The notes beneath the pieces are model-generated. The model was not told the DNA's origin, made no database searches, and worked only from the letters and a program-made list of their open reading frames with translations. This document shows, in pieces, positions 2,271 through 33,655 of a stretch of DNA of 40,076 bases. The stretch spans positions 1 to 40,076 of the forward strand of contig OX337243.1 of assembly GCA_946965045.2 (NCBI GenBank), in the 5' to 3' direction. Numbering within the stretch: position 1 is the first letter of the stretch; each line of letters begins with the position of its first letter. The stretch is from Epithemia pelagica. Lineage: Eukaryota > Protista > Bacillariophyta. Both the position numbers and the translations under genes were made by a program.

Positions 2271-2272
2271 AC

Positions 2273-2357: not shown

Positions 2358-2363
2358 TTTGTA

Positions 2364-2446: not shown

Positions 2447-2458
2447 GTAATTAGTAAT

Positions 2459-3189: not shown

Positions 3190-3190
3190 A

Positions 3191-3565: not shown

Positions 3566-3605
3566 ACACACTTTATTTAATACTTGATTATATTTTAGTA
3601 TATAT

Positions 3606-4575
3606 CAAATCAATTTTGCATAATTATTTGGTCATTTGGTTGAAAAGATATAATTTTAATAAATAATTTTCAACCACAAATTTGAAAATTTTATTTAAAA
3701 ATTGAAAATTTGTGGTTCAAAATTCGGTATATAATAAGGCTTAAATTAGTATCAAAATCACAAAAAATCATAAATCATAGGTAGTAACCTATGATTTTAT
3801 TTATCTGTTTTGGTTATCCGTTTTTTATTTTTTAAAATAGTATAAAAAATCAATGATAATCAATTTATTAATAAGTGATTTTAATTATCATTTTATTTCA
3901 TTTTATTAAAATAAAAATAATTTTGCATAATTATTTGGTCATTTGGTTGAAAAGATATAATTTTAACAAATAATTTTGAACCACAAATTTTCAATTTTAT
4001 TTAAAAATTGAAAATTTGTGGTTCAAAATTCGGTATATAATAAGGCTTAAATTAGTATCAAAATCACAAAAAATCACAAATCATAGGTAGTAACCTATGA
4101 TTTTATTTATCTGTTTTGGTTATCCGTTTTTTATTTTTTAAAATAGTATAAAAAATCAATGATTTTAATAATTAATAATTAATTTTGATTATCATTTTAT
4201 TTCATTTTATTAGAATAAAATCAATTTTGCATAGTTATTTGGTTATTATTTTTTAAGTAGTATAAAAAATCAATGATAATCAATTTATTAATAAGTGATT
4301 TTAATTATCATTTTATTTCATTTTATTGAAATAAAAATAATTTTGCATAATTATTTGGTCATTTGGTTGAAAAGATATAATTTTAATAAGTAATTTTCAA
4401 CCACAAATTTGAAAATTTTATTTAAAAATTGAAAATTTGTGTTTCAAAATTCGGTACATAATAAGGCTTAAATTAGTATCAAAATCACGAAAAATCATAA
4501 ATCATAGGTAGTAACCTATGATTTTATTTATCCGTTTTCTATTTTTTAAAATAGTATAAAAAATCAATTTTCACA
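3606..4575. repeat. repeat locus 1: about 3 copies plus a truncated copy of the ~305-bp hairpin unit
   Basis: Marker GGCTTAAATT at 3738, 4044, 4465; TTTTGCATA at 3614, 3921, 4225, 4341. Boundaries approximate. Confidence 0.95.
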
Positions 4576-4645
4576 GTTATTTGGTTTAATTGTATAATAA
4601 GTGTTATTATAAATCGATTTTCATATTAAATTTTTATAATATAGT

Positions 4646-4873
4646 ATGTTATTACAAGCAGCAAAATGCATTGGAGCTGGTTTAGCCACATTTGGTTTGG
4701 CTGGTGCTGGTATTGGTATTGGAAATGTTTTTGGTTCTTTATTAAATTCAATGGCTCGAAATCCCTCGTTGAAAGACGAGCTTTTCAAAATGGCTATATT
4801 GGGTTTTGCTTTAACCGAAGCTATAGCATTGTTTTCATTAATGATTGCTTTTTTATTATTATTTGCTTTTTAA
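4646..4873 (+). CDS. atp9: ATP synthase subunit c
   Basis: [11 protein letters not shown]...ARNPSL...[11 protein letters not shown]; MLLQAAK N-terminus is diatom-like. Confidence 0.99.
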
Positions 4874-4898
4874 TATTAATTAAAAAGCAAATAATAAC

Positions 4899-4971
4899 AA
4901 GTATATAACTCAATTGGTTGAGTGTGAGCCTTTTAAGCTTAATTATTTAGGTTCGAATCCTAATATACTTG
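4899..4971 (+). tRNA. trnK: tRNA-Lys(UUU)
   Basis: Acceptor AAGTATA/TATACTT, arm TGAGC-CTTTTAA-GCTTA, T arm TTAGG-TTCGAAT-CCTAA. Confidence 0.93.
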
Positions 4972-4974
4972 TTA

Positions 4975-5292
4975 ATGTTTGAATTAATTTTTTATATTAT
5001 AACTTGCAATATTTTAATATTTATTATTGGTTTTTTCGGTATATTTATAAATAAACGGAATATTTTTATGATTTTGGTTTCCATTGAAGTTTTATTTTTG
5101 GGCTTAAATTTAAATTTTGTAATTACTGCTATATATTTAGACGATATTGTTGGACATATTTTTGTTATATTTATTTTAACTATTATAACATGTGAATCCG
5201 CAATTGGCTTATCATTATTGATAATATTATATAAATTAAAAAAGTCCATTGATATTAATTTAGTTAAAGGATTATTATTAACGAAATTTTAA
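4975..5292 (+). CDS. nad4L: NADH dehydrogenase subunit 4L (ATG 4975)
   Basis: GIFINKRNIFMILVSIE...LDDIVGHIF...CESAIGL motifs. Confidence 0.96.
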   Translation: MFELIFYIITCNILIFIIGFFGIFINKRNIFMILVSIEVLFLGLNLNFVITAIYLDDIVGHIFVIFILTIITCESAIGLSLLIILYKLKKSIDINLVKGLLLTKF

Positions 5293-5322
5293 GTTGTAAC
5301 AATTAAAAAATAATAAACAAAA

Positions 5323-5526
5323 ATGCCTCAGTTTGATTTATTACTTATTTTTTCACTATTAAAAGACTTAACATTAACTTTAATATTTTATTATTTAACT
5401 TTTTCAATTTTATTTGTGCAAAATATAACAACATTTAAATTTCGAACAAAAATTTTAAAAACTCAAAATTCAATTTTATTAAAAGCTATTATAACTGCAA
5501 ACAAATTATTGTTTAAAACTATATAA
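5323..5526 (+). CDS. atp8: ATP synthase subunit 8
   Basis: MPQFD N-terminus, one hydrophobic segment, basic tail (FKFRTK). Confidence 0.9.
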
Positions 5527-6182
5527 TAGTTTTAAACAATAACTTGTTTTTTATACAAAAAATTAAAATGAGTATTAAAAAAGTATCATTATTATTATAT
5601 TTAATTACTAATGGTATACAAATACCACATTACTGTTTTTATAATGATTTATCAATAGCGGGTAATTGCCGAGTTTGTTTAGTTGAAATTAATAAAGCAC
5701 CAAAACCTATAGTATCATGTTCAACCAATATTGAAATTATTTTAAATAAAAATCAAATTTTTTTTGATACTCCATTAGTTAAAAAAGCTCGTGAAAATAT
5801 AATTGAATTTTTATTATTGAACCATCCATTAGACTGTCCGATTTGTGACCAAGGTGGCGATTGTGACTTACAGGATCAGTCAATTTTTTTTGGTTTTATT
5901 AAACGTCGTTTTTTTAATTACAAACGTATTGTTAACGATAAGGAACTTGGACCTATTATAAAAACTGTTATGACAAGGTGTATTCACTGCACGCGTTGTG
6001 TTAGGTTTTTTAATGATATTTGTGGATCAAATGAGTTAGGTGTTTTTGGGCGGGGTAATAAAAGTGAAATTGGATCATACACACATAAAATAATATTTTC
6101 CGAGCTATCAGCTAATGTAATTGATATTTGTCCTGTTGGTTGGTTGACTAATCAAATTTTCAATAGGAGCGTTAACGACTAA
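5526..6182 (+). CDS. nad11: NADH dehydrogenase subunit 11, N-terminal Fe-S part; start uncertain (ATA 5523/5526, TTG 5544 or ATG 5568)
   Basis: [35 protein letters not shown] and DICPVG Fe-S motifs. Frame open from 5517. Confidence 0.95.
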
Positions 6183-7704
6183 AAATTATCCTTTTGAAAT
6201 ACGTGGGTGGGAAATTCAACAAATTGTGCATTTTGATCCGATTGACACTTTTTGTTCAAATGTAAAATTTTTAATTAATAAAAATCAAATTTTGCAAATC
6301 GAACCAACTTACTCAAGTCAATTTCATAAAAACTCATATATAAATAATAAAACACGTTATTTTTTTGATGGTCTAAAAAATTTTAATACTACTAATTTTC
6401 TATTTTTTAATAAAATTAAAAAATTAGCCAAAACTTTAGTACAAACATTGTATATTTTTGAATTAAATTTTTTAAAATATCGGTTTATAAGTTATTTTTA
6501 TATTGTTTATGAATACTTAAATTTAAATTCGTTATGTTTATTAGCTTTATTTAAACAAAAATACTTTTTCTTTAAAATTATCAATGCTAATAATGTTAAA
6601 ACAAATAATAATTTAGAGCATACTTTATTGTTTAATTTAATAAAATTAAATAACTCAAATATGTGTTTATTAATTAATTCAAATATAAAATTGCAAAATA
6701 GTTTATTATATTTAAAACTAAAACAGCGTTTTTTGAAAGGTTCCTTTAAATTATTTAGTATTAGTTCATTTTTTAATTTAGTTTTTTCATTTAAATTGTT
6801 GAGTAATAATTTAAAAACTCTTATTTTGATTACGGAAGGTCGCCATCCAATTTGTCAAAATATAATAGCTGCGAAAGCACCATTTTTTATATTTAATTCC
6901 GATTTATATAAACGTATTGATAATCCTATTATTTATATAATTATGTTATATTTAAATAAGTTCATTTATTTTTACAAATTAAATATATTAAATTCATCAA
7001 TTTGGAATACTGGTATTAATTTAATTAATACAGATTCTAACAACACTAATAAAATTATTTATCAATTTAGTTTTATTTATTTTATTAATATTGAAAATAA
7101 AAATTTATTAATATTAACAAAAATTAAATTACTATATTTAACAAAAATTATTAACTTGATGTCAATTAAAAAAACATATCTAAATCAAAATTATTTTAAT
7201 ATGTTTTCAAATTCATTAGTATTACCGAAAAATTCAACTCATTTTTATTTACCAACAAAAAATATATTTGAAAATATCGAATTATTTTTCAATACACAAG
7301 GAATCATAAAACAAACAAACAAATTATTTTCGTTGAATAATTTAAAATCAAGTTGGAAATTATTACGAGTTCTATTAACAAAGTTAAATACTGTAAACCA
7401 AATTATTAAAAAAACTATATTTGTTAATTATAACTTATTTAGCCATTTTAATTTTATTTTTATTATTTTTTTATTTTATTTGGCCAAAAAAATAATTACA
7501 AAAAATTTAACAATAAATAATAGTAATACATTTATATTTAAAAATATATTATTTAATATAAATAAACAAGTTAAATACGTAAATACAATTATTAAATTTT
7601 CATTAAATGACTTTTTTATTGGCAATGATGGCTTCACTAATCAATCATTAATTTTAATAAAATGTTCAAAAATTAATCGAATTCAAGTAACAAATTTCTT
7701 TTAA
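6163..7704 (+). CDS. nad11: NADH dehydrogenase subunit 11, C-terminal part; no ATG near its 5' end, proposed ATA 6163
   Basis: Frame open from 6148 reads [22 protein letters not shown]..., matching the Nad11 consensus GALTSKPYAF.ARPWE. Later [12 protein letters not shown] and EGRHPICQ motifs also match. Confidence 0.88.
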
Positions 7705-7708
7705 ATGA

Positions 7709-9199
<1,491 letters not shown>

Positions 9200-9216
9200 T
9201 TATAAAACTAATTTTT

Positions 9217-9287
9217 TGGAATATGGCTGAATGGTAAAGCATTTGTTTTTGGTACAATTTATAAAGGTTCAAATCCTTTTATTCCAT
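9217..9287 (+). tRNA. trnQ: tRNA-Gln(UUG)
   Basis: Acceptor TGGAATA/TATTCCA, loop TTTTGGT, T arm AAAGG-TTCAAAT-CCTTT. Confidence 0.92.
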
Positions 9288-9291
9288 AGTT

Positions 9292-10050
9292 ATGTTATTA
9301 GCTCCTTTGGAACAATTTGAAATACTATCATTAAATAATATTTTTTTATTCAATTTTAACTTATCATTAACAAATTTTTTAATTATGAATTTATTAACTT
9401 TATTTATTATTATTATTATTATATTTTTTAATAAAAACAATTTAAAAAAGACACAATATTTTTATTTGATTCCAAATAATTGGCAATATTTAATTGAACT
9501 ATTAACTACTACAATTGTAGCACAATTAATAATTAATTCAATCACAAAAAACAACAAACAGTATTTTTTTATAATTGGATTAATATTTAATTTTATTTTA
9601 TTTAGTAATATTATTGGACTTATTCCGTATTCGTTTACAGTTACAAGTCATTTATATGTGACTTTTTTATTATCATTTTCTGTTTTTATTGGTATTAATA
9701 TTATTACTATAAACAAGTATAAATTTAAAAGCTTTTTGTTATTTTTTCCCGCAAATACGTCAATTTTTCTAGCTATAATTTTAGTTCCAATCGAATTTAT
9801 ATCATATATTGCAAAACCAATCAGCTTAGGTGTTCGTCTATTCATTAATTTAATGGCAGGACACACTCTTTTGAAAGTTATTGTTGGTTTTGCATGGGAT
9901 TTATTGTTACTCGAGCTATTAAATTCATTTTTATTATTAATACCAATGATTACTTTAGTAATTTTATTTGGTTTGGAATTAGGTGTTGCATTAATTCAAA
10001 GTTATGTTTTTACGATTTTAACATGTATATATATTGAGGATGGAAGTTAG
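9292..10050 (+). CDS. atp6: ATP synthase subunit a
   Basis: APLEQFEI, IGLIPYSFTVTSH and SLGVRLFINLMAGH motifs. Confidence 0.98.
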   Translation: MLLAPLEQFEILSLNNIFLFNFNLSLTNFLIMNLLTLFIIIIIIFFNKNNLKKTQYFYLIPNNWQYLIELLTTTIVAQLIINSITKNNKQYFFIIGLIFNFILFSNIIGLIPYSFTVTSHLYVTFLLSFSVFIGINIITINKYKFKSFLLFFPANTSIFLAIILVPIEFISYIAKPISLGVRLFINLMAGHTLLKVIVGFAWDLLLLELLNSFLLLIPMITLVILFGLELGVALIQSYVFTILTCIYIEDGS

Positions 10051-10887: not shown

Positions 10888-12165
10888 ATGGTTAAAAAAT
10901 TTATTCCAATAATTAATTTTTCAATAATAAGTAAATTTAAAAATTTGTTTATTATAAATTGGTTTCGACCAAACAATAATAATTATATTATATCATTTTT
11001 TGATAGTCACTTAATTCATTACCCAACACCTGTAAGTTTATCATATGCATGGAGTTTTGGCTCGTTAGCTGGAATTTGTTTAATAATTCAAATTTTAACA
11101 GGTATTTTTTTAGCAATTCATTATATACCCAATATTAAATTTGCTTTTGATTCGATTCAATATATCATGAGGGACATCCCATATGGTTGGTTAATTCGTT
11201 ATATTCATGCAAATGGAGCTTCAATGTTTTTTATTATTGTATATATGCATTTATTTCGTGGGCTTTATTATGGATCATATATTGAACCGCGTGAATATAT
11301 ATGGTCATCGGGTGTAATTATTTTATTATTAATGATGGGAACTGCATTTACTGGTTATGTTTTACCTTGGGGTCAAATGAGTTTTTGGGGAGCTACTGTG
11401 ATAACAAGTATGCTATCAATTTTACCAAAAGGTCAAATTATCGTTGAATGGTTATGGGGCGGCTTTGTAATTAAGGATCCAACATTAAGGCGTTTTTTTA
11501 TAATCCATTTTCTTTTACCATTTATTATTGTAGCTTTTAGCTTATTGCATTTAGCTTTATTACATAAAATTGGCTCAAACAATCCTATCGGTTACGATTT
11601 TGAAGGTGATTACTTAACATTTTATCCGTATTTTGCAATAAAAGACTTATTTGCATTTACTATTTTTTTATTTTTATTCGCTTATTTTATTTTTTACAAT
11701 CCTGAATACTTAAACCACCCAGATAATTATGTTCGAGCTAATCCAATGAAAACACCTTTACATGTAGTTCCTGAATGGTATTTTTTAGTATTTTATGCAA
11801 TTTTACGTGGAATACCACACAAAACTATAGGTATTTTATCGATGTTTGGATCAATTATTATATTACTAATTATACCTTTTGTAAATAGTTCCATAATTCG
11901 AAATACTAGTTATAGACCAGTTTATAAAATTTTCTTTTGGTTATTTGTTGTTGATTGTATTATATTATTATGGGTGGGTGCTATGGATATTAAATATAAA
12001 CGTTATTTAATAATAAGTCAATTTGCAACAATTTATTATTACTTATTTTTTTTGTTTATTTTACCAATTTCAGGAAAAATTGAGCAGTTATTATTAAAAT
12101 ACAATAATATACTATATGTTATCAAATATTCAATATTATACAATTCACTTAAAAACAAACCATAG
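10888..12165 (+). CDS. cob: apocytochrome b
   Basis: HYPTP, WSFGSLAG, IRYIHANGAS, LPWGQMSFWGATV and VPEWY motifs. Confidence 0.99.
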   Translation: MVKKFIPIINFSIISKFKNLFIINWFRPNNNNYIISFFDSHLIHYPTPVSLSYAWSFGSLAGICLIIQILTGIFLAIHYIPNIKFAFDSIQYIMRDIPYGWLIRYIHANGASMFFIIVYMHLFRGLYYGSYIEPREYIWSSGVIILLLMMGTAFTGYVLPWGQMSFWGATVITSMLSILPKGQIIVEWLWGGFVIKDPTLRRFFIIHFLLPFIIVAFSLLHLALLHKIGSNNPIGYDFEGDYLTFYPYFAIKDLFAFTIFLFLFAYFIFYNPEYLNHPDNYVRANPMKTPLHVVPEWYFLVFYAILRGIPHKTIGILSMFGSIIILLIIPFVNSSIIRNTSYRPVYKIFFWLFVVDCIILLWVGAMDIKYKRYLIISQFATIYYYLFFLFILPISGKIEQLLLKYNNILYVIKYSILYNSLKNKP

Positions 12166-12940
12166 TTTTCATTTAGTTGATCCAAGTCCGTGGCCTTTTA
12201 TAGGTTCAATTGGTAGTTTTTCAATAACTGTCGGTGGCGTATTATTCATGCACAATTTCAAAGGTGGGTGGAATTTATTTTTAACTGGTTTTATTTTAAT
12301 TTTATACACAATGATTTGTTGGTGGCAGGATATTATTCGGGAAGCCACATTCGAGGAAGTTCATAATTTCATTATTAAAAAAAGTTTACGGTTGGCTATT
12401 ATTTTATTTATTATATCAGAAATTATGTTTTTTTTTGCTTTTTTTTGGGGGTTTTTTCATTCGAGTATTTCACCGGTTTATAATATTGGAGCAGTTTGGC
12501 CACCAAAATACATTACTGTTATAAATTCGTACACGATTCCCTTAACTAATACGTTTCTATTATTAAGTTCAGGGATTACTATAACATGGGCACACCATGC
12601 AATTATTATTAGAAATAAAAAACAGACTATTATTGGATTATTTTTTACATTAATATTTGCAGTATTATTCACAAGTTTACAAGCTTTTGAATATAATAAT
12701 GCACCTTTTTGTATTAGTGATGGGGTATATGGGAGTTGTTTTTTTATGGCTACTGGGTTTCATGGGTTTCATGTTATTATTGGCACAATAGCTCTATTTA
12801 TCAGCTTATTGCGAATAATATTAAATCATTTTTCAAATACAAACCATTTTGGTTTTGAAGCGGCTATTTGGTATTGGCATTTTGTTGATGTAGTTTGGCT
12901 ATTTTTATTTATTAATATTTATTGGTGGAGTAACAAATAA
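12116..12940 (+). CDS. cox3: cytochrome c oxidase subunit 3
   Basis: HSFHLVDPSPWP, GFHGFHV and WYWHFVDVVW motifs. Confidence 0.99.
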   Translation: MLSNIQYYTIHLKTNHSFHLVDPSPWPFIGSIGSFSITVGGVLFMHNFKGGWNLFLTGFILILYTMICWWQDIIREATFEEVHNFIIKKSLRLAIILFIISEIMFFFAFFWGFFHSSISPVYNIGAVWPPKYITVINSYTIPLTNTFLLLSSGITITWAHHAIIIRNKKQTIIGLFFTLIFAVLFTSLQAFEYNNAPFCISDGVYGSCFFMATGFHGFHVIIGTIALFISLLRIILNHFSNTNHFGFEAAIWYWHFVDVVWLFLFINIYWWSNK

Positions 12941-14680: not shown

Positions 14681-14707
14681 AGTAAACATTGAAATATATT
14701 CAATTGT

Positions 14708-17700
14708 TATTATTTTTAAAAATAGTATAAAAAATAAATGATTTTAATAATTAATTTTGATTATCATTTTATTAAAATAGAATCAATTTTGTATAATTAT
14801 TGGGTCATTTGGTTGAAAAGATATAATTTTAATAAATAATTTTGAACCACAAATTTAAAAATTTTGCCAAAAAATTGAAAATTTGTGGTTCAAAATTCGG
14901 TATATAATAAGGCTTAAATTGGTATCAAAATCACAGAAAATCACAAATCATAGGTAGTAACCTATGATTTTATTTATCTGTTTTGGTTGTCTGTTTTTTA
15001 TTTTTAAAAATAGTATAAAAAATCAATGATTTTAATAATTAATAATTAATTTTGATTATCATTTTATTTCATTTTATTAAAATAAAATCAATTTTGCATA
15101 ATTAGTTGGTCATTTGGTTGAAAAGATATAATTTTAATAAATAATTTTGAACCACAAATTTGAAAATTTTATTTAAAAATTGAAAATTTGTGGTTCAAAA
15201 TTCGGTATATAATAAGGCTTAAATTAGTATCAAAATCACAAAAAATCATAAATCATAGGTAGTAACCTATGATTTTATTTATCTGTTTTGGTTATCCGTT
15301 TTTTATTTTTAAAAATAGTATAAAAAATCAATGATTTTAATAATTAATAATTAATTTTGAACCACAAATTTGAAAATTTTATTTAAAAATTGAAAATTTG
15401 TGGTTCAAAATTCGGTATATAATAAGGCTTAAATTAGTATCAAAATCACAAAAAATCACAAATCATAGGTAGTAACCTATGATTTTAGTTATCTGTTTTG
15501 GTTGTCTGTTTTTTATTTTTAAAAATAGTATAAAAAATCAATGATTTTAATAATTAATAATTGATTTTGATTATCATTTTATTTCATTTTATTAAAATAA
15601 AATCAATTTTGCATAATTAGTTGGTCATTTGGTTGAAAAGGTATAATTTTAATAAATAATTTTGAACCACAAATTTGAAAATTTTATTTAAAAATTGAAA
15701 ATTTGTGGTTCAAAATTCGGTATATAATAAGGCTTAAATTAGTATCAAAATCACAAAAAATCATAAATCGTAGGTAGTAACCTATGATTTTATTTATCTG
15801 TTTTGGTTATCCGTTTTTTATTTTTAAAAATAGTATAAAAAATCAATGATTTTAATAATTAATAATTAATTTTGATTATCATTTTATTTCATTTTATTAA
15901 AATAAAATCAATTTTGCATAATTAGTTGGTCATTTGGTTGAAAAGATATAATTTTAATAAATAATTTTGAACCACAAATTTAAAAATTTTGCCAAAAAAT
16001 TGAAAATTTGTGGTTCAAAATTCGGTATATAATAAGGCTTAAATTGGTATCAAAATCACAAAAAATCACAAATCATAGGTAGTAACCTATGATTTTATTT
16101 ATCTGTTTTGGTTGTCTGTTTTTTATTTTTAAAAATAGTATAAAAAATCAATGATTTTAATAATTAATAATTGATTTTGATTATCATTTTATTTCATTTT
16201 ATTTCATTTTATTAAAATAAAATCAATTTTGCATAATTAGTTGGTCATTTGGTTGAAAAGGTATAATTTTAATAAATAATTTTGAACCACAAATTTGAAA
16301 ATTTTATTTAAAAATTGAAGATTTGTGGTTCAAAATTCGGTATATAATAAGGCTTAAATTAGTATCAAAATCACAAAAAATCATAAATCGTAGGTAGTAA
16401 CCTATGATTTTATTTATCTGTTTTGGTTATCCGTTTTTTATTTTTAAAAATAGTATAAAAAATCAATGATTTTAATAATTAATAATTAATTTTGATTATC
16501 ATTTTATTTCATTTTATTAAAATAAAATCAATTTTGCATAATTAGTTGGTCATTTGGTTGAAAAGATATAATTTTAATAAATAATTTTGAACCACAAATT
16601 TAAAAATTTTGCCAAAAAATTGAAAATTTGTGGTTCAAAATTCGGTATATAATAAGGCTTAAATTGGTATCAAAATCACAAAAAATCACAAATCATAGGT
16701 AGTAACCTATGATTTTATTTATCTGTTTTGGTTGTCTGTTTTTTATTTTTAAAAATAGTATAAAAAATCAATGATTTTAATAATTAATAATTGATTTTGA
16801 TTATCATTTTATTTCATTTTATTTCATTTTATTAAAATAAAATTAATTTTGCATAATTAGTTGGTCATTTGGTTGAAAAGGTATAATTTTAATAAATAAT
16901 TTTGAACCACAAATTTGAAAATTTTATTTAAAAATTGAAAATTTGTGGTTCAAAATTCGGTATATAATAAGGCTTAAATTAGTATCAAAATCACAAAAAA
17001 TCATAAATCGTAGGTAGTAACCTATGATTTTATTTATCTGTTTTGGTTATCCGTTTTTTATTTTTAAAAATAGTATAAAAAATCAATGATTTTAATAATT
17101 AATAATTAATTTTGATTATCATTTTATTTCATTTTATTAAAATAAAATCAATTTTGCATAATTAGTTGGTCATTTGGTTGAAAAGATATAATTTTAATAA
17201 ATAATTTTGAACCACAAATTTAAAAATTTTGCCAAAAAATTGAAAATTTGTGGTTCAAAATTCGGTATATAATAAGGCTTAAATTGGTATCAAAATCACA
17301 AAAAATCACAAATCATAGGTAGTAACCTATGATTTTATTTATCTGTTTTGGTTGTCTGTTTTTTATTTTTAAAAATAGTATAAAAAATCAATGATTTTAA
17401 TAATTAATAATTGATTTTGATTATCATTTTATTTCATTTTATTTCATTTTATTAAAATAAAATCAATTTTGCATAATTAGTTGGTCATTTGGTTGAAAAG
17501 ATATAATTTTAATAAATAATTTTGAACCACAAATTTGAAAATTTTATTTAAAAATTGAAAATTTGTGGTTCAAAATTCGGTATATAATAAGGCTTAAATT
17601 AGTATCAAAATCACAAAAAATCATAAATCATAGGTAGTAACCTATGATTTTATTTATCTGTTTTGGTTATCCGTTTTTTATTTTTAAAAATAGTATAAAA

Positions 17701-18877
17701 AATCAATGATTTTAATAATTAATAATTAATTTTGATTATCATTTTATTTCATTTTATTAAAATAAAATCAATTTTGCATAATTAGTTGGTCATTTGGTTG
17801 AAAAGATATAATTTTAATAAATAATTTTGAACCACAAATTTAAAAATTTTGCCAAAAAATTGAAAATTTGTGGTTCAAAATTCGGTATATAATAAGGCTT
17901 AAATTGGTATCAAAATCACAGAAAATCACAAATCATAGGTAGTAACCTATGATTTTATTTATCTGTTTTGGTTGTCTGTTTTTTATTTTTAAAAATAGTA
18001 TAAAAAATCAATGATTTTAATAATTAATAATTAATTTTGATTATCATTTTATTTCATTTTATTAAAATAAAATCAATTTTGCATAATTAGTTGGTCATTT
18101 GGTTGAAAAGATATAATTTTAATAAATAATTTTGAACCACAAATTTGAAAATTTTATTTAAAAATTGAAAATTTGTGGTTCAAAATTCGGTATATAATAA
18201 GGCTTAAATTAGTATCAAAATCACAAAAAATCATAAATCATAGGTAGTAACCTATGATTTTATTTATCTGTTTTGGTTATCCGTTTTTTATTTTTAAAAA
18301 TAGTATAAAAAATCAATGATTTTAATAATTAATAATTAATTTTGATTATCATTTTATTTCATTTTATTAAAATAAAATCAATTTTGCATAATTAGTTGGT
18401 CATTTGGTTGAAAAGATATAATTTTAATAAATAATTTTGAACCACAAATTTAAAAATTTTATTTAAAAATTGAAAATTTGTGGTTCAAAATTCGGTATAT
18501 AATAAGGCTTAAATTAGTATCAAAATCACAAAAAATCATAAATCATAGGTAGTAACCTATGATTTTATTTATCTGTTTTGGTTATCTGTTTTTTATTTTT
18601 AAAAATAGTATAAAAAATCAATGATTTTAATAATTAATAATTAATTTTGATTATCATTTTATTTGATTTTATTAAAATAAAATCAATTTTGCATAATTAT
18701 TTGGTCATTTGGTTGAAAAAATATAATTTTAATAAATAATTTTGAACCACAAATTTAAAAATTTTATTTAAAAATTGAAAATTTGTGGTTCAAAATTCGG
18801 TATATAGTAAGGCTTAAATTAGTATCAAAATCACAAAAAATCACAAATCATAGATAGTAACCTATGATTTTATTTAT
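14708..18877. repeat. repeat locus 2: tandem array of 14 copies of the ~305-bp unit
   Basis: Marker GGCTTAAATT at 14911, 15216, 15426, 15731, 16036, 16351, 16656, 16971, 17276, 17591, 17896, 18201, 18506, 18811 (spacings 305 or 315, one 210). Confidence 0.98.
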
Positions 18878-18912
18878 TAGTTTTAGTATGTTGATATTGT
18901 TTTAAAAATCAA

Positions 18913-18967: not shown

Positions 18968-19059
18968 GTAACAATATTAAAACGAAACAATAATTGATTT
19001 CATTGATAGATTTTAGTATAACCAAATAAAATAAATTATTTCAATAATTTATATTAATT

Positions 19060-20519
19060 TTTTAATAAGTTTTATTCTGGCTTTGAATGAACGCTATAAA
19101 TTCACTTAACACATGCTAGTTTAACAATTTATTTTGTAGCGTACAGGTGAGTACAAAATGAATTGATACTTTTTAGCTTTATGAAATATAAAATATTCAA
19201 AAAAATTTATTTAGTTAAAAAATAATTTGCTAAAAAATTAATTTATTTAATATTAGGTAGTTGGTAATAGTTAATAGCTTACCAAGCCAATTATATTTAA
19301 CTGTTTTTAACGAAATATCAGTCACACTGGAAATAAAAAGTTTCAGACTTTATAAGTCAGCAGTGGGGAATATTGGACAATGAATGAAAATTTGATCCAG
19401 TGAAATTTAATATATGATGACTGCTTTTATAGTTGTAAAATTTAAATTTATTAAAATCATAATGATTTTGATAATTAGTAGTCCCGACAAATATTCGTGC
19501 CAGCAGTCGCGGTAATACGAATGGGGCCAGCGTTATTCGTATTTATTAGGTGTAAAAGTATAAAAATGGTAATTTGAAATTATAATATAAATTTTAAATA
19601 GTTATTTTAAAAATTTTTATAATAATTAAATTTACTTGAGTTTTTTTCCGAAAAATGGAATTTTATACGTAAAAATAAAATTTTATAATATATAAAGGAA
19701 CATCAATTGTGAAAACTGTTTTTTAGTAAAAACTGACATTGTTATACGAAAATTTGGGTAGTAAACGGGATTAGATACCCCGGTAATCCATTTTGTAAAT
19801 TATGAATACTATAATTTAAAATAAGTTTTCAGTATTTTATTTTAAATTTTAAGCTAACGCAATAAGTATTTTACCTGAAAATTAAAATTTTATTATTTAA
19901 ATTCAAAGAAACTGACGGGAGCTAACTTTAGTGGTGGAATATGTGGTTTAATACGACAATACACGTAAAACCTTACCAATTTTTGAATATTTATAATACC
20001 AAAAAATAATTAGCATATCTTTGGTCTTGTAAATACAGGTGCTGCACGGCTGTTGTAAGTCCGTTTTGTGAAATGTTTGGTTAAATCCTTTTAACGGACG
20101 AAACCCTTATTGTTAAAAATAATAAATTATCATAAAATTTAACTTATAATTAATAACAAATTAAATAAATAAGGATTATAACAAGTCATTGTGACCCTAA
20201 TAAATTGGGCAACACACGTATTACAATAAAAATTACAAAAAATTAATAAAACATATGTTTATTTTAATTTTAAAAATTTTTTCAGTACTAATTATAATCT
20301 GAAACTTGATTATATGAAGTTGGAATCACAAGTAATCATAAATCAGCATGTTATGGTGAATAATATCTTTAGTTTTGTACATACCGCCCGTCACATGCAA
20401 AAAATTTATTTTGTTTGAAAATATAACTATTATAAATTTATATTTATTAAAAAATTTGTGATTTGTATGAAGTCGTAACAAGGTAATCGTACGTGAGCGT
20501 GCGGTTGGAAAAATAAAAC
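19060..20519 (+). rRNA. rns: small subunit rRNA (ends approximate)
   Basis: Universal motifs AGTTTTATTCTGGCT, GTGCCAGCAGTCGCGGTAA, GGATTAGATACCC, GTACATACCGCCCGTC, AAGTCGTAACAAGGTA. No anti-Shine-Dalgarno at the 3' end. Confidence 0.98.
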
Positions 20520-20545
20520 GGTTAATCAGTTAATCAATATTGTTT

Positions 20546-23249: not shown

Positions 23250-26075
23250 TAAATAAAATTATTTCTAAAATGCATCAAATAATAACCTTTATATTAAAAC
23301 ATAATATCGACGTATAAAAACGAAATATATTTATAACAAACATAATCAAGTTAAATTTAAATATTATCGACCATTAAAAAATAACTTATTTTATATTTAA
23401 GTTTTTTATAAATAAAATAAAAATAAATTTAGTGAACCGAAACATCCTAGTAACTAAAATAATTAAAATCAAGCGAGAGTTTATTATTAGTTGTGAACAA
23501 AAATAAACAAAATACTAATTTACTTTTATTTATTTTAATTTTAAGCTAAAAAAGGATAGCCCTGTAAAAATATAAAAATTAAATTAAAAACATAACAATA
23601 ATTTATTGTATTGTTAAAATAAGGAACTAACCTTACAATTTAAAGTTTTAATATTATATAGCATATTTAGTACTGTAAAGGAAATTTGGTGAATAGCTTT
23701 TTCGAAATTGTAACAATTAAAATTTGATGTAAATAAATTTTTATAGTTTAATTTTAAAAACAATAAAGTACCTTTTGAATAATGGATTAATAAGTTTATT
23801 TTAAAAGCAAGCTTGAATTAAATATTATATACAAAAGCTAAAAAAAATTAAGTTTTAAAAAGCAAAGCATATTTAAGTTTTTAAAATAATTACCCGAAAC
23901 CGAGTGATTTAACCATAAACAGACTAAAAATTAATTTTTAAATTATTGGAAGGTCGAACCCGTACATGTGGCAAAATGTTGGGATGATTTATGGTTAGTG
24001 GTGAAATGCTAATCAAACTCGGAAATAGCTGGTTTTTTGCGAAATATATTTTAGTATAGCATTAAAAAAATTATGTTAAAGGTAACGCTATTAATAAACA
24101 ACGGAAATTAATATTTTACGAAGTTTATTTAAACTGTGAATTTTAACCAAAATTTTTTAATAGTCAAACATTGAATGCTAAGGTTCAAATTTGTTTAAAG
24201 GGAAACAGCCCATATTAATAGTTAAGGTTTTCAAAAGTAATTTATTAAAAAATAATCAAAAATTAAAAAATTTTGTATGTATGCTTGGAACCAGCGATCA
24301 TTTAAAGAGTACGTAAATGTTCACTAAATTAAATTTTGAATATTTATAATTAATAAAATTTAAATTATTTAATACCGAAACTTTAAATTTAATATATTAC
24401 TTAATTATAAATAATATTAAATGGTAGCAAAACGTCCTGTTAAGTAATAGTTGGAATTTTTTTTATAGTAATATAAATTTTTATCAGGATTGATAATATT
24501 AATATTAGTAATTTTAAATAATAAATAAAAATCATTATCATTTATTAGTTCACAGGTTCCAAAAAATTAATTTTTGGTTGTAAATCGGACCCTAAAAAAA
24601 TAACGACAGTTTTATTTTTAATGGGTAAATATTAGTTAAATTCATTATTATTAAATTAATGACAATATTTAAACTAATAATATATTTACTGGTTTATAAT
24701 AAAATATTAATAAAAATATTCAGGAAAAAATTAATTTTATAAAGCTTTGCTTTATAACCGTACATGACCGACACTGGTGAATTTATTTAGTATATAAAAA
24801 TGTTTATAAAAATTATATTAAAGGAACTCGGCAAAAAAGCCTTATAACTTTGGTTAAAAGGTCAATAAATAATAAATAAATTAAAGTATTTATTATAATT
24901 TATAAAAACAAAAACAGCGCCTGTTTAACAAAAACTTAGGTCCTTGCGAATTTGTAAAAACTAGTATAAGGACTGATGCCTGCCCAGTGCGAATCAGATC
25001 AAAGAGTACTAACATTATTTTGTTAATATTTCAAACTATCGTAAACGGCAGCTGTAATTTTGACAGTTCAAAGGTAGCGAAATTCCTTGGCATTTTATTG
25101 GTGTCCTGCATGAATGGCATAACGACTGTTTAACTGTCTTTAATATAAATATAATGAACTTATAATTTTTGTGCAAATACAAAACAATTATGAAAAGACG
25201 GAAAGACCCCATGAACCTTTACTATAATTAAATACTGTTAATAAAAATTTTGTATAAAGGATAGGTGGTTTTGTTATTATTAATTTGTTAATTTATTGAT
25301 GCTTATTTTATCAACATTAATAAGCACTAATAATTATAATTGGTATTAAATTTTTATTATTGTACAATAAAATATTTTTAACTAGTATGGAATACCACTT
25401 ATGAAATTTTATTTTAACTAATTTTTAACAAATTATATAAAAAATATTTATTTAATTGGTAGTTTGACTGGGGCGGTGGCCTCCTAAAATGTAACGGGGG
25501 TGTATAAAATTAATTTCACACAAAAATATAATAGTTAATATAAATTAATTGACTGTAAAATTAACCAATTAAACAGGGATTTTAATTAATCGATTATAAT
25601 GATCCAATCATTCAAAATGGTATGCTGATTGCTTAACGAATAAAAGGTACTCTGGGGATAACAGGTTAATAATTTTTGCGAGCTCCTTATCAACAAAATT
25701 GCTTAATACCTCGATGTTGGATTATCCCATCCTGGAAATGCATTTGTTTCCAAGGGTTTGACTGTTCGTCAATTAAAGGGGTACATGATCTGAGTTCAAA
25801 ACGTCGTAAGACAGTTTGGTCCTTATCTTTCACAATTGATAAAAAAATTAAGAGGCTTAAATTTTAGTACGAAAGGACCAAATTCAATAAGTAAATGATG
25901 ATTCAGCTATATTACCAAATGTAATCGCTGATTAGTTAAACTTATAAAAAATAACCATAAAAATATGTGGGAAATTTTCCTTTAATTATAATTTTTTAGT
26001 ATAAATAATAAACTATTATTTTAATAGGTTTAAAGTTTAATAAATTAAAATGCTTTAAAAAACTAACAATATAAT
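23250..26075 (+). rRNA. rnl: large subunit rRNA (ends approximate), no intron seen
   Basis: Motifs GAACCGAAACATC, CCCGAAACCGAGTGA, GGAACTCGGCAA, GGTAGCGAAATTCCTTG, GGGGATAACAGG, CCTCGATGTTGG, AGTACGAAAGGACC. Confidence 0.98.
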
Positions 26076-27950
26076 AAATCAATTTTGCATAATTTTTTGG
26101 TCATTTGGTTGAAAAGATATAATTTTAATAAATAATTTTGAACCACAAATTTGAAAATTTTATTTAAAAATTGAAAATTTGTAGTTCAAAATTCGGTATA
26201 TAATAAGGCTTAAATTGGTATCAAAGTCACAAAAAATCACAAATCATAGGTAGTAACCTATGATTTTAGTTATCTGTTTTGGTTGTCTGTTTTTTATTTT
26301 TAAAAATAGTATAAAAAATCAATGATTTTAATAATTAATAATTGATTTTGATTATCATTTTATTTCATTTTATTAAAATAAAATCAATTTTGCATAATTA
26401 GTTGGTCATTTGGTTGAAAAGGTATAATTTTAATAAATAATTTTGAACCACAAATTTGAAAATTTTATTTAAAAATTGAAAATTTGTGGTTCAAAATTCG
26501 GTATATAATAAGGCTTAAATTAGTATCAAAATCACAAAAAATCATAAATCGTAGGTAGTAACCTATGATTTTATTTATCTGTTTTGGTTATCCGATTTTT
26601 ATTTTTAAAAATAGTATAAAAAATCAATGATTTTAATAATTAATAATTAATTTTGATTATCATTTTATTTCATTTTATTAAAATAAAATCAATTTTGCAT
26701 AATTAGTTGGTCATTTGGTTGAAAAGATATAATTTTAATAAATAATTTTGAACCACAAATTTAAAAATTTTGCCAAAAAATTGAAAATTTGTGGTTCAAA
26801 ATTCGGTATATAATAAGGCTTAAATTGGTATCAAAATCACAAAAAATCACAAATCATAGGTAGTAACCTATGATTTTATTTATCTGTTTTGGTTGTCTGT
26901 TTTTTATTTTTAAAAATAGTATAAAAAATCAATGATTTTAATAATTAATAATTGATTTTGATTATCATTTTATTTCATTTTATTTCATTTTATTAAAATA
27001 AAATCAATTTTGCATAATTAGTTGGTCATTTGGTTGAAAAGGTATAATTTTAATAAATAATTTTGAACCACAAATTTGAAAATTTTATTTAAAAATTGAA
27101 GATTTGTGGTTCAAAATTCGGTATATAATAAGGCTTAAATTAGTATCAAAATCACAAAAAATCATAAATCGTAGGTAGTAACCTATGATTTTATTTATCT
27201 GTTTTGGTTATCCGTTTTTTATTTTTAAAAATAGTATAAAAAATCAATGATTTTAATAATTAATAATTAATTTTGATTATCATTTTATTTCATTTTATTA
27301 AAATAAAATCAATTTTGCATAATTAGTTGGTCATTTGGTTGAAAAGATATAATTTTAATAAATAATTTTGAACCACAAATTTAAAAATTTTGCCAAAAAA
27401 TTGAAAATTTGTGGTTCAAAATTCGGTATATAATAAGGCTTAAATTGGTATCAAAATCACAAAAAATCACAAATCATAGGTAGTAACCTATGATTTTATT
27501 TATCTGTTTTGGTTGTCTGTTTTTTATTTTTAGAAATAGTATAAAAAATCAATGATTTTAATAATTAATAATTGATTTTGATTATCATTTTATTTCATTT
27601 TATTTCATTTTATTAAAATAAAATCAATTTTGCATAATTAGTTGGTCATTTGGTTGAAAAGGTATAATTTTAATAAATAATTTTGAACCACAAATTTGAA
27701 AATTTTATTTAAAAATTGAAAATTTGTGGTTCAAAATTCGGTATATAATAAGGCTTAAATTGGTATCAAAATCACAAAAAATCATAAATCATAGGTAGTA
27801 ACCTATGATTTTATTTATCTGTTTTGGTTGTCTGTTTTTTATTTCTAAAAATAGTATAAAAAATCAATGATTTTAATAATTAATAATTAATTTTGATTAT
27901 CATTTTATTTCATTTTATTAAAATGAAAATAATTTTACATAATTATTTGG
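26076..27950. repeat. repeat locus 3: tandem array of 6 copies of the ~305-bp unit
   Basis: Marker at 26207, 26512, 26817, 27132, 27437, 27752. Confidence 0.98.
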
Positions 27951-28058
27951 TTGAATTGGAAAATATAAAAAAAATAAACATAAATAAACAACGTATAAGT
28001 AATTAGTTTATTTTAATAACTAATTACTTGAGATAAACAAGCCAACTTAGAAAAAGCT

Positions 28059-28248
28059 CAGGGGCGGTAGCAAATTAAATCCGCCTGGCATGCAAATGTC
28101 ACGATTATACAAACCTTTGAACAGCAACTTCAGCTGGGTTGTCTGTTCAAAAACTGGTATATAGTCACTACCCGCGTGATAATCGTAGGAGGAGGAGCCG
28201 TACGGATTTTTGGTTTTTGGGATAAACTCAAATTTCCTTCGGAAATTT
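28059..28248. other. GC-rich non-coding island with nested inverted repeats
   Basis: About 46% GC over 28061-28210 by hand count. Stems GGCGG/CCGCC, TTTGAACAG/CTGTTCAAA, ACGATTAT/ATAATCGT and AAATTTCC-TTC-GGAAATTT. Confidence 0.7.
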
Positions 28249-28305
28249 CCAATTTCCGCTTTTTTTTTTTTTTCTCCAATTTCTTTTTTGAAAAAAAAAA
28301 TTTTT

Positions 28306-28437
28306 GGGGGGGTCTAAAAAAAAAAAACACGATTTTTTTTTTTCAAAATTTTTTTTAAAAAAAAAAATCTCTGATTTTTTTTTTTTAAAAAAAATTTTGA
28401 AAAAAAAAAAATCGTGTTTTTTTTTTTAGACCCCCCC
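28306..28437. repeat. 132-nt palindrome 1 (G7...TCT loop...C7)
   Basis: Arms 28306-28369 and 28373-28437 are complementary except three +/-1 homopolymer differences. Confidence 0.97.
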
Positions 28438-28445
28438 TAATAATT

Positions 28446-28577
28446 GGGGGGGTATTTTTTTTTTATCACGATTTTTTTTTTTAAAAATTTTTTTTAAAAA
28501 ATGAAAACCTCTGGTTTTCATTTTTTAAAAAAAATTTTTAAAAAAAAAAAATCGTGATAAAAAAAAAATACCCCCCC
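28446..28577. repeat. 132-nt palindrome 2 (G7...TCT loop...C7)
   Basis: Arms 28446-28509 and 28513-28577 are complementary except one +/-1 homopolymer difference. Confidence 0.97.
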
Positions 28578-28581
28578 TATA

Positions 28582-28640
28582 GGGGGTGGGTGGCGGGGGG
28601 TGGGTGGCGGGGGGTGGGTGGCGGGGGGTGGGTGGCGGGG
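28582..28640 (+). repeat. 4 x 14-nt GGGGGGTGGGTGGC tandem repeat, G-quadruplex-competent
   Basis: Units at 28582 (13 nt), 28595, 28609, 28623, then GGGG; nine runs of 3 or more G. Confidence 0.95.
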
Positions 28641-28729
28641 TTAGTAACCAATTCATTCCTTACTAAAGCTATTTAGTTGAAATAGTATTACTTGAACAAA
28701 TTACTTTTAAAAATAATTGAAAGACACTG

Positions 28730-28970
28730 TTTAAAATTCGGTATATAATAAAGTTTAAATTTATACCAAAATTAAAAAAATTGAAAATGGCAAAGAGTTA
28801 TAACCTATAATTAATAAGTGATTTTAATTATCGTTTTGTTTCGTTTTATTAAACTAGTATCAAAATCACAAAAAATCATAAATCATAGGCAATAACCTAT
28901 GATTTTATTTATCTGTTTTGGTTATCCGTTTTTTATTTTTAAAAATAGTATAAGAAATCAATGATTTTGA
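28730..28970. repeat. repeat locus 4: degenerate, rearranged copy of the unit
   Basis: AAAATTCGGTATATAATAA, TAGTATCAAAATCACAAAAAATCATAAATCATAGG..AACCTATGATTTT and GGTTATCCG blocks. Confidence 0.9.
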
Positions 28971-29002
28971 TCTTAGGGTTATCTAAAGTGTACATATAAT
29001 TT

Positions 29003-29545
29003 ATGTTAATTTTTTTCGATATTCCAATTATTAAAATTCAGTATTTTTTTTCGGTAAAGTATAGTATTTTTTTAAACTCTAAAATTTTAATTAATATTTT
29101 GACTATTTTAAAATATCATTTTAAATATTATTTTAAATTATTAACATGTATATCAGGAGTCGATTATCCTGAAAATAAAAATCGATTTGTTATTATTTAT
29201 GAAATTTTATCTTTAAAATTTAATAATAGGTTACGTATTAAAGTTATTGTTAATGAAATTATAGCGATTTTTTCAATTAGCAAATTATTTATTTGTTCAA
29301 TTTGGTGGGAAAATGAAATATGGGATATGTTTGGTATTATTTTTTTAAAACGTAAAAATTTGGTACGTTTATTAACTGATTATGGTTTTCATGGTTTCCC
29401 ATTACGAAAGGATTTTCCTTTAACAGGCTTTATTGATGCTAAATATAATTTAACTAAAAATCGAATACTGTATGAAAAAATTGAATTAACTCAACATTAT
29501 CGTATTTTTAATTTTCACTCACCATGGAATAATGTGTATTTTTAA
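29003..29545 (+). CDS. nad9: NADH dehydrogenase subunit 9
   Basis: ISGVDYP, WWENEIWDMFG and LLTDYGFHGFPLRKDFPLTG motifs. Confidence 0.97.
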   Translation: MLIFFDIPIIKIQYFFSVKYSIFLNSKILINILTILKYHFKYYFKLLTCISGVDYPENKNRFVIIYEILSLKFNNRLRIKVIVNEIIAIFSISKLFICSIWWENEIWDMFGIIFLKRKNLVRLLTDYGFHGFPLRKDFPLTGFIDAKYNLTKNRILYEKIELTQHYRIFNFHSPWNNVYF

Positions 29546-31753: not shown

Positions 31754-33400
31754 ATGTTTTTTATTGGTTTTATTAAAGCAAATTATTTTTTATTTTTTAT
31801 TGAATATTTTATTGGAAGTATTTTAATTTTTATATTAATTGTTTATACATTAATTATTAATAATATTTTTGGTATTTTTGTTTGTAGGGTAATCAGCTAT
31901 TGTTTAAGTTTTATTTTTTTTTTATTAATTTATATGATTTTGAATGATATTTTATTTTTTACTATTGATTTAACTAATTATAATAATATTGGGTTAAATA
32001 AATTACTGATTTTTGATTACATTTCAATTATTTCAAAATTACTTATTTTATTTTTAGCATTTATATTTTTTTTGATTATTACTAATGTTTTAAAATTTTA
32101 CAAATTAACTTCGTTTGAATTTTTAATAATATTAACGTTTAATATATTTGGGTTAATTTTACTTTGTTCCAGTTATGATTTAATAATCATTTTTTTATCA
32201 TTTGAATTGACAGCCTTATCGTCTTATTTTTTGGTATCCTTACGAAAATCATTTAATTATTCGATTGAATCAGGACTAAAATATTTGATTATTGGTACTT
32301 TTTCATCCTCTTTTTTTTTACTTGGCAGTTTTTTACTTTATTATTATTTAGGAACACTTATTTTAGTTGATATTTATTTATTAATTTTTAATATTGAGTA
32401 TTTATTTTTCAACAATTATAGTTTATTATTCAAAAAATTTATTATTAAAGTTGAATTATTCAATATTTTATTAAATATTTACGTGTGTAAGTATTGGTTT
32501 TTAGAATATATTACTTTAAATATCGCTTTATTTAATAATACAAAGCCTATTATTGAATTAGCTTTTTTATTATTATGTTTAAGCATTTTTATTAAAATTG
32601 GATTTGCACCATTTCATATTTGGTCTATTCAAATATACGAAGTATCCGTATCGATTATTGTATTTTTTTTCATGTTATTAGTTAAGTTAAGTTATTTTTT
32701 AATTTTATTTCGAATTTATCATGTTTTTTTTAATATTAATAATACAATTTTTAGTTATTTATTTAATTTTATTGCTTTTTTGAATATATTTATTAGTTCA
32801 TTTTCAAATTTGAAAGAAAAAAAAATTAAAACTTTATTAGTCTATAGTTCACTTAGCCATATTGGTTATATTTTATTAGCATATAATATGAACTGTTTTT
32901 TAGGCTTTGAAATGTTTTATTTTTATATTATTGTTTATTTGTTATCGAACATTATTATTTGGTATACTATTATACAATTAAAGAAACATATTTATTATAA
33001 AAAAAAAATATCAAAAAACATAAGTGATTTTATTTTATTAAATAAAACGAATAAGATATTAGCTTTTGCTTTATTGATCACATTTTTATCAATAGGGGGA
33101 ATACCTCCTTTAATTGGTTTTTTTTCAAAATTAGGTATTTTTTTAGTTTTAATTTCTGAAAAATTTTTTAGTTTTTGTATCTTTATTAGTTTTTGTAGTG
33201 TAGTTTCTATTTTTTATTACTTGCGTTTAATAAAAGTTTTATATTTTGAAAATAAAACGATAGGTGAGCTCTTTCAGCCAATTTGTTCACATAATATATT
33301 TATTTTTATTTATTGTATTTTCAATTTGTTATTTTTGTTTATAAATCCTAAATTATTATATTTAATTGTACATAAAATAATCATATTTGAATATTTATAA
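31754..33400 (+). CDS. nad2: NADH dehydrogenase subunit 2
   Basis: SIESGLKYLIIG, KIGFAPFHIW, YSSLSHIGY and GGIPPLIGF motifs. Confidence 0.98.
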   Translation: MFFIGFIKANYFLFFIEYFIGSILIFILIVYTLIINNIFGIFVCRVISYCLSFIFFLLIYMILNDILFFTIDLTNYNNIGLNKLLIFDYISIISKLLILFLAFIFFLIITNVLKFYKLTSFEFLIILTFNIFGLILLCSSYDLIIIFLSFELTALSSYFLVSLRKSFNYSIESGLKYLIIGTFSSSFFLLGSFLLYYYLGTLILVDIYLLIFNIEYLFFNNYSLLFKKFIIKVELFNILLNIYVCKYWFLEYITLNIALFNNTKPIIELAFLLLCLSIFIKIGFAPFHIWSIQIYEVSVSIIVFFFMLLVKLSYFLILFRIYHVFFNINNTIFSYLFNFIAFLNIFISSFSNLKEKKIKTLLVYSSLSHIGYILLAYNMNCFLGFEMFYFYIIVYLLSNIIIWYTIIQLKKHIYYKKKISKNISDFILLNKTNKILAFALLITFLSIGGIPPLIGFFSKLGIFLVLISEKFFSFCIFISFCSVVSIFYYLRLIKVLYFENKTIGELFQPICSHNIFIFIYCIFNLLFLFINPKLLYLIVHKIIIFEYL

Positions 33401-33655
33401 TAATCAATTTTGATTATCATTTTATTTCACTTTATTAAAATAAAGTCAATTTTGCATAATTATTTGGTCATTTGGTTGAAAAGATATAATTTTAATAAAT
33501 AATTTTGAACCACAAATTTAAAAATTTTATTTAAAAATTGAAAATTTGTGGTTCAAAATTCGTTATATAATAAGGCTTAAATTAGTATCAAAATCACAAA
33601 TCATAGGTAGTAACCTATGATTTTATTTATCTGTTTTGGTTATCCGTTTTTTTAT
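33401..33655. repeat. repeat locus 5: solitary near-complete copy of the unit between nad2 and trnM
   Basis: Contains both main hairpins (TTTTGAACCACAAATTT/AAATTTGTGGTTCAAAA and AAATCATAGGT/ACCTATGATTT). Confidence 0.95.

Follow-up and report, generated by a model that had tools for sequence, protein, structure and literature searches.

[quoted passage not shown]

Two 132-nt palindromes of the same geometry and different sequence stand side by side in the mitochondrial DNA of Epithemia pelagica, which raises the question of how such a pair arose, what has kept both copies symmetrical, and whether it serves the genome that carries it. An initial annotation, made from the letters of the sequence, had proposed a replication or resolution module and named a double-cruciform origin, a hairpin-telomere resolution site and a bidirectional terminator as possible roles. 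To our knowledge, diatom mitochondrial genomes still lack a defined replication origin, promoter or terminator. For algae generally, the idea that the repeat region is the origin rests on analogy.

[quoted passage not shown] It contains bacterial-type rns (19059-20520) and rnl (23257-26012) genes, tatC, nad7, nad9 and ribosomal protein genes, as well as 17 tRNA genes plus one at the start of the sequence, and nearly all of its genes lie on the + strand. The nad11 gene is split into one open reading frame for the Fe-S domain and one for the molybdopterin domain (5544-6182 and 6226-7704; Pfam), and is likewise split in relatives (locus L007 and one further relative contig). The frames of cob (10888-12165) and cox3 (12116-12940) overlap by 50 nt; in one relative, cob-cox3 was called as a single 685-aa product (L002 7438-9495).

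Almost all other non-coding DNA of the genome belongs to a 305-bp repeat family, located at 3592-4570, 14707-18884, 26070-27951, 28729-28968 and 33372-33652. The family occupies the boundaries of gene blocks, and each of its units bears a hairpin with 29-nt arms. The palindromes are situated in the only unique island within this non-coding repeat-family DNA. The features of the island and its borders are as follows.

26076..27951: tandem array of the 305-bp repeat, about 6 copies; left border of the island
27952..28728: unique non-coding island of 777 bp between rnl and nad9; self-BLAST repeat matches end at 27951 and resume at 28729
28040..28260, + strand: GC-richer (about 45% GC) structured segment; RNA fold z = -2.7
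28240..28273, + strand: terminator-like hairpin (CGGAAATT/AATTTCCG) followed by T14 (T14 at 28260); consensus scan
28262..28305: decayed A/T tracts similar to a portion of a palindrome arm; direct-repeat family D1
28306..28437, strand not assigned: palindrome 1 (P1), 132 nt; G7 clamp 28306-28312, left arm to 28369, TCT loop 28370-28372, right arm 28373-28437 with the C7 clamp at 28431-28437; CACGA at 28328-28332 and TCGTG at 28412-28416
28430..28464, + strand: terminator-like hairpin C7-TAATAATT-G7 followed by T10; consensus scan
28438..28445: 8-nt spacer between P1 and P2, TAATAATT
28446..28577, strand not assigned: palindrome 2 (P2), 132 nt; G7 clamp 28446-28452, left arm to 28509, TCT loop 28510-28512, right arm 28513-28577 with the C7 clamp at 28571-28577; CACGA at 28467-28471 and TCGTG at 28552-28556
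28559..28587, - strand: terminator-like hairpin CCCCC-TATA-GGGGG followed by T10; consensus scan
28582..28640, + strand: G-rich tandem array (GGGGGTGGGTGGCG)x4.2; Tandem Repeats Finder, 100% matches
28729..28968: partial, diverged unit of the repeat family; right border of the island, just upstream of nad9 (29003)

In contigs from two sequencing runs, the repeat family (27800-27990 and 28834-28974) had a summed depth of about 2,000-9,900, compared with 10-19 on unique mtDNA. These sums are not copy numbers and lie far above what roughly 25 genomic copies would give; the excess could stem from subgenomic repeat molecules that are amplified, from nuclear copies or from other organisms.

The left half of P1 reads G7 TCT A12 CACGA T11 CAAAA T8 A11 TC and leads into the TCT loop, after which the right half reads GA T12 A8 TTTTG A12 TCGTG T11 AGA C7. 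P2 is built in the same way, with a left half of G7 TA T10 AT CACGA T11 A5 T8 A6 TGAAAACC, the TCT loop, a mirrored right arm and C7. The geometry given in the initial annotation (132 nt each, arms of 64 and 65 nt, TCT loops, G7/C7 clamps) is thus present in full. The reported difference between the spacers also stands, with A12 in P1 and T10 in P2; the P2 spacer itself had been given as TA-T10 and is actually TA-T10-AT.

The symmetry of both palindromes in the assembled sequence is far beyond chance. When the two arms of each were aligned, the mismatches consisted of homopolymer lengths differing by one, with three such positions in P1 and a single one in P2 (T11 versus A12), and neither palindrome showed a substitution mismatch between its arms. 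Alignment of P1 with P2 revealed 15 differing columns, which correspond to some five or six events, one of them the change of a block from an A run to a T run. The claim that each change is mirrored on the opposite arm was borne out for 15 of 15 columns, and no unmirrored substitution between the two palindromes was found in the arm alignment.

The predicted secondary structure is far more stable than that of shuffled sequence. Positions 28290-28650 fold as single-stranded DNA at -128.7 kcal/mol, against -52.3 ± 4.1 kcal/mol for their dinucleotide-shuffled versions (z = -18.6; none of the 100 was as stable). With DNA parameters, the individual hairpins reach -58.8 kcal/mol (P1) and -64.5 kcal/mol (P2). 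Two short alternative pairings that the annotation had pointed out can form as well, namely the hairpin C7-TAATAATT-G7 across the 8-nt gap between the palindromes (-9.4 kcal/mol) and the hairpin CCCCCTATAGGGGG at 28573-28586 (CCCCC-TATA-GGGGG), which joins P2 to the G-rich repeat (-6.2 kcal/mol).

How did the pair arise? Tandem Repeats Finder reports a 140-nt period spanning P1 and P2, which indicates that the two are tandem copies. Both have the non-self-complementary TCT loop in the same orientation, and in both the CACGA box is accompanied by T11 on the left and A12 on the right. These common asymmetries imply that a whole palindrome was duplicated, rather than two half-units being palindromised independently. 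The locus also holds traces of other internal repetition: the interior of P1 shows a 42-nt periodicity of A-run/T-run units, and 28266-28306 in the decayed stretch ahead of P1 is 80% identical to 28333-28373.

The mirrored changes could reflect either selection for pairing or arm-to-arm templated correction via the hairpin. Such correction is established behaviour of quasipalindromes and yields the same pattern; the mirrored changes alone do not show selection for structure. From mirrored divergence produced by either route we infer that the hairpins form in vivo. The divergence between P1 and P2 also makes the state with two separate hairpins (-124.8 kcal/mol) much more stable than the cross-paired state, in which for instance the left arm of P1 pairs with the right arm of P2 (-75.1 kcal/mol). 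With identical copies the two states would be nearly isoenergetic and the pair prone to deletion, and the pair presumably survives because its members have diverged. P1 and P2 offer a clean natural example of palindrome symmetry kept through sequence turnover.

Directly 3' of P2 follows the G-rich array, 59 nt long with a 14-nt unit, which is G-rich on the sense strand of all adjacent genes. A regular-expression search for G-quadruplexes on both strands of the 40,076-bp mtDNA gave 14 overlapping matches, all of them within this array. The same short stretch (28306-28640) holds all runs of six or more G and all runs of five or more C in the mtDNA, as well as 11 of the 19 A/T runs of at least 10 nt (13 if the runs at 28260 and 28291 are included). 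Genome-wide, the box formed by CACGA and a T run occurs in the four palindrome arms only. No comparable inverted repeat was found elsewhere in the mtDNA, where the next class is the 29-nt-arm hairpin of each 305-bp repeat unit. The palindrome locus is therefore the most singular non-coding locus of the genome, which makes candidate replication module, the reading of the initial annotation, a fair one; it agrees with proposals made for algal stem-loops, and the locus resembles yeast origins in layout.

The GC-richer segment upstream of P1 is possibly a gene for a divergent 5S-like RNA. On visual inspection, it is reminiscent of the loop-E region of 5S rRNA, a likeness without model support: 28040-28260 had no match in Rfam, 5S families included, and 5S covariance models gave no match at E <= 10 in 27900-29050 or at E <= 0.5 across the genome. 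The mitochondrial 5S rRNA of raphid diatoms is known to be very divergent (PMC4267664). The sequence of 28000-28207 is identical in a metagenomic relative, in which the flanking repeat differs, and the GC-richer segment has no homolog in the relative loci L001-L005.

Gene order gives the island a history. Relatives have the order nad5-trnH-rnl-rns-nad9, and in three relatives rnl-rns-nad9 or rnl-rns abut, with spacers of about 60-75 nt. Here, rns has been relocated beyond the other large array, leaving its former place to the island. Judged from these gene orders, the position of the island is a rearrangement breakpoint, and the relocation of rns behind a large array suggests that the rearrangement was repeat-mediated. 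The cumulative GC skew shows no turn at the palindromes. Since it runs monotonically with the gene strand, tracking gene orientation, it is uninformative as an origin signal.

Related mtDNAs were checked for the same architecture in five loci anchored on NAD9 or NAD5 (NAD9 64-70% identical), which include about 41 kb of a circular 48.9-kb long-read genome. None of them contained a palindrome of this kind, a G7/C7 run or a sequence homologous to the island. Searches further afield were blank as well. Metagenome contigs were scanned for NAD9, metagenome and viral contigs for a 22-mer taken from the island, viral contigs also for the motif of the G array, and prokaryote and viral contigs for a gapped pattern of clamp and CACGA; exact look-ups of two island open reading frames likewise gave no match. 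At curated thresholds, Rfam detected only rRNAs and tRNAs in the genome. Permissive Rfam matches were to generic long-hairpin models (plant miRNA precursors) far below the cut-offs and were discarded as not meaningful. On these sequence comparisons, the module is lineage-specific.

A search of the diatom literature returned no paper describing such a palindrome pair. The statement in the initial annotation that the element has no description consequently holds for the sequence, for which the database scans were blank, and fails for the kind, as algal mitochondrial stem-loops beside GC-rich islands have been described.

The related 48.9-kb diatom mitogenome has a repeat region of its own, about 16 kb long (about 14 kb of it examined) and bounded by orf105 on one side and the 3' end of rns on the other. 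It contains 467-bp arrays, a tandemly repeated GC-rich 21-mer and numerous perfect hairpins whose arms measure 16-20 nt, and has no sequence in common with the repeats described here (L001 11005-19130, L007 16337-21980).

The reality of the palindromes was assessed with independent sequence data. Logan contigs from four runs were compared with 27800-29200, with 28276-28555 masked in the comparison; the contigs break off at 28203-28275 and begin again at 28622. Contigs from three runs of the organism confirmed the two island flanks, as did those of a close relative in an independent biofilm metagenome study. A joint from 27951 to 28849 and loose ends in the read contigs represent the repeat unit running on. 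For this strain there is also a second assembly (ENA ctg994l), which is linear and 42,803 bp long, is 100% identical over the 10,716 nt compared, and contains no G7 or C7 run. One of its ends lies at position 28830, 190 nt past the G-rich array, where its repeat unit is 100% identical to the variant on the island side; the other falls within the array ahead of the island, which in ctg994l is longer (at least 4.8 kb). The circle closes exactly: the two ctg994l pieces are 11,471 nt apart, which equals 531 + 10,940 nt across the end and start of the window. The palindromes and their homopolymer lengths rest on one assembly. A break around the module, as in ctg994l, would be expected of a structure that is hard to read or of a frequent break site.

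The array behind rnl differs in length between the assemblies, with at least 4.8 kb in ctg994l (L006 15808-20617) and about 1 kb here (26975-27951). This may reflect copy-number heteroplasmy or assembly ambiguity.

These data bear on two of the alternatives. If the palindromes, or their exact form, had come from an assembly or consensus error, one would expect what is seen at 28276-28621, which is without any read-derived contig; the ends of the second assembly on either side of the island, the differing length of the adjacent array and arm mismatches confined to ±1 in long homopolymers, a typical long-read error, would fit as well. Fold-back chimeras, however, produce inverted duplications of unique sequence at the scale of reads, and do not yield a pair of 132-nt A/T-tract palindromes that differ from each other, set between unique flanks that are not inverted. 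Given that these flanks were confirmed independently, by the contigs of three runs and the biofilm metagenome, and that the second assembly reaches the island-side repeat variant without a difference, we regard an artefact as very unlikely. More improbable still is that the module resolves the hairpin telomeres of a linear genome form. Perfect palindromes are the kind of substrate on which telomere resolvases act, and ctg994l is linear and ends near the module. The sequences flanking the palindromes are unrelated, not inverted copies, and the map closes exactly into a circle of 40,076 bp, which together disfavour the resolution site named in the initial annotation. Moreover, the linear contig ends in tandem repeats, the usual place for an assembly to break, and not at a palindrome centre, and there are two different palindromes rather than one.

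Two further alternatives accept the module as it stands and differ in what they make of it. The absence of conservation in the relatives and databases searched, together with the position at a breakpoint of gene order, in a repeat region that is hypervariable and lineage-specific, is what a neutral or selfish by-product would show. According to this explanation, slippage and template switching in extremely A/T-rich, recombination-prone repeats generated the palindromes, quasipalindrome correction keeps them symmetrical, and the locus does nothing for the organelle beyond being prone to breakage or rearrangement. The repeat regions of diatoms are known to differ from species to species, the 42-nt periodicity in P1 is typical of slippage products, and arm-to-arm correction suffices to explain the mirrored changes without selection. 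Furthermore, palindromes in mitochondrial control regions have been reported to scale with AT content (PMC1762429). A by-product explains poorly why a genome of about 20% GC, which lacks such runs elsewhere, should have four G7/C7 clamps, all of them intact, and 59 nt of G-rich array, an outcome unlike that of AT-biased drift. The CACGA box is kept in four of four arms, both palindromes measure exactly 132 nt despite several indels, and a diverged pair persists where identical tandem palindromes should be lost quickly. On balance, a by-product is nearly as likely as a role in a control region. A boundary of transcription is a serious third alternative, although a less probable one that we consider unlikely. 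Here, the module would end or process the upstream transcript (rns...nad5-trnH-rnl and the GC-richer segment), insulate the nad9-nad4-nad6-nad2 unit and block antisense transcription, by means of the long hairpins or of the short C7-loop-G7 hairpins with their U runs on both strands. The location between an rRNA gene and a block of protein genes, where no tRNA serves as processing punctuation, would suit such a function. A consensus scan found 13 terminator-like sites in 27500-29300 compared with 1.1 expected, a consensus that is bacterial and may differ from that of the host; among them are 28240-28258 with a T run (+), 28430-28453 with T10 (+) and 28587-28570 with T10 (-). The block change from A12 in P1 to T10 in P2 creates T runs after both short hairpins. 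The bidirectional terminator of the initial annotation is therefore matched in form, in that short hairpins followed by T10 on both strands fit the consensus, a fit that does not imply function. Against a boundary, diatom mitochondria use a phage-type polymerase rather than the bacterial enzyme on which the scan is modelled, rnl-rns-nad9 abut in the relatives without such an element, and two 64-bp hairpins with a G-quadruplex array far exceed what a terminator needs.

We tentatively favour the view that the module is a hairpin or cruciform element of a control region for initiating replication or recombination, a preference that stops short of an even chance. A single GC-clamped A/T palindrome was duplicated in tandem with a 140-nt period, and the copies then diverged, each change being either transferred to the other arm or paralleled there. 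Both copies can therefore still fold as 64-bp hairpins, or as cruciforms when the DNA is duplex, each shut by its G7:C7 clamp, and the symmetry would be upheld by arm-to-arm templated correction, selection, or both. Together with the G-quadruplex array, the hairpins may mark a start of mtDNA replication that is initiated by recombination or a break, or primed by an R-loop. Both the formation of hairpins in vivo and the replication role are what we infer from this architecture. A more specific version, in which the twin cruciforms and the G-quadruplex array are the replication origin itself, with extruded palindromes being cut or a G-rich transcript serving as R-loop primer so that replication and molecule ends would begin at the module, and with mirrored divergence selected to keep two independent hairpins in place of one unstable cross-paired structure, appears doubtful. 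If it were true, a mitochondrial origin would be defined in a diatom for the first time, as a convergent counterpart to the yeast ori. In any case, the locus reduces to one compact candidate of about 330 nt, consisting of two hairpins and one G-quadruplex array. A defined cis-element of this kind would serve the building of mitochondrial replicons in diatoms, and modules like it break organelle assemblies, as happened in ctg994l of this strain.

How does the module compare with known systems? Double-hairpin elements of Allomyces, other fungi and Thalassiosira pseudonana, in which the mitochondrial repeat region consists of 75-bp double-hairpin elements, likewise place two adjacent hairpins in mitochondrial non-coding DNA. 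They are tens of bp long, present in many dispersed or arrayed copies and thought to be mobile, whereas the module described here is 272 nt long, single-copy and without a target duplication, and so falls outside that class. A parallel for the G-rich array is CSB II of mammals, a G-rich tract on the non-template strand of the mitochondrial control region, where an RNA/DNA G-quadruplex halts transcription and leaves a replication primer. The array is also G-rich on the sense strand, but is repeated 4.2 times and lacks a defined promoter; to ascribe a priming role to it by its likeness to CSB II would be purely speculative.

The very A/T-rich genome, the complementary GC blocks that close an A/T stretch, and the G-rich cluster are shared with the ori/rep sequences of Saccharomyces. 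The yeast ori consensus consists of GGGGGAGGGGGTGGGTGAT, about 200 A/T, GGGTCCC, 29 A/T and GGGACC (PMC5726470), and the 11-mer GGGGGTGGGTG is common to the G cluster of the yeast ori and the 14-nt array unit here. The yeast sequences have demonstrated ori activity and occur in 7-8 copies per genome, with 29 nt of A/T between the GC blocks; here there is one locus, in which a 118-nt A/T palindrome, present twice, takes the place of the 29-nt stretch. The G cluster of yeast is single and adjoins the nonamer promoter, in contrast to the 4.2-copy array, which lies on the other side relative to the sense strand. The yeast nonamer promoter WTATAAGTA has 4 matches in the genome compared with 4.4 expected, none of them within 5 kb of the module. 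The resemblance to the yeast ori is accordingly an analogy of layout, and not one of homology or membership.

The closest precedents come from algae, where stem-loops in mitochondrial repeat regions with a GC-rich island have been proposed as origins or regulatory sites (PMC2397417, PMC8283788, PMC5910586). In Hemiselmis andersenii, the single-copy type II stem-loop is located in a repeat-free segment of about 300 bp, adjoins a GC-rich stretch of 40 bp and an all-A/T stretch of 190 bp in a genome that has all its genes on one strand, and was proposed to regulate replication or transcription (PMC2397417). As in these algae, a stable, A/T-rich DNA stem-loop is predicted in the main non-coding region beside tandem repeats, and GC skew tracks gene orientation. 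The sharp contrast between GC-rich and A+T-only sequence in H. andersenii also has its counterpart, with the clamps, the G-rich array and the segment of about 45% GC set against the A/T arms. P1 and P2 have no sequence similarity to the type II stem-loop of H. andersenii, the hairpins of Rhodomonas salina or p1/p2 of Phaeocystis globosa. The stem measures 20-22 bp in H. andersenii, compared with 64 bp here, where it occurs twice, diverged and G7/C7-clamped; the palindromes of P. globosa are repeat-built and 573-588 bp long, compared with 132 nt. A further difference from the algal stem-loops is the G-quadruplex array that directly follows the palindromes. The stem-loop with a GC-rich island is thus a kind already known, and what is new here is the tandem, diverged and clamped pair together with its G-quadruplex array.
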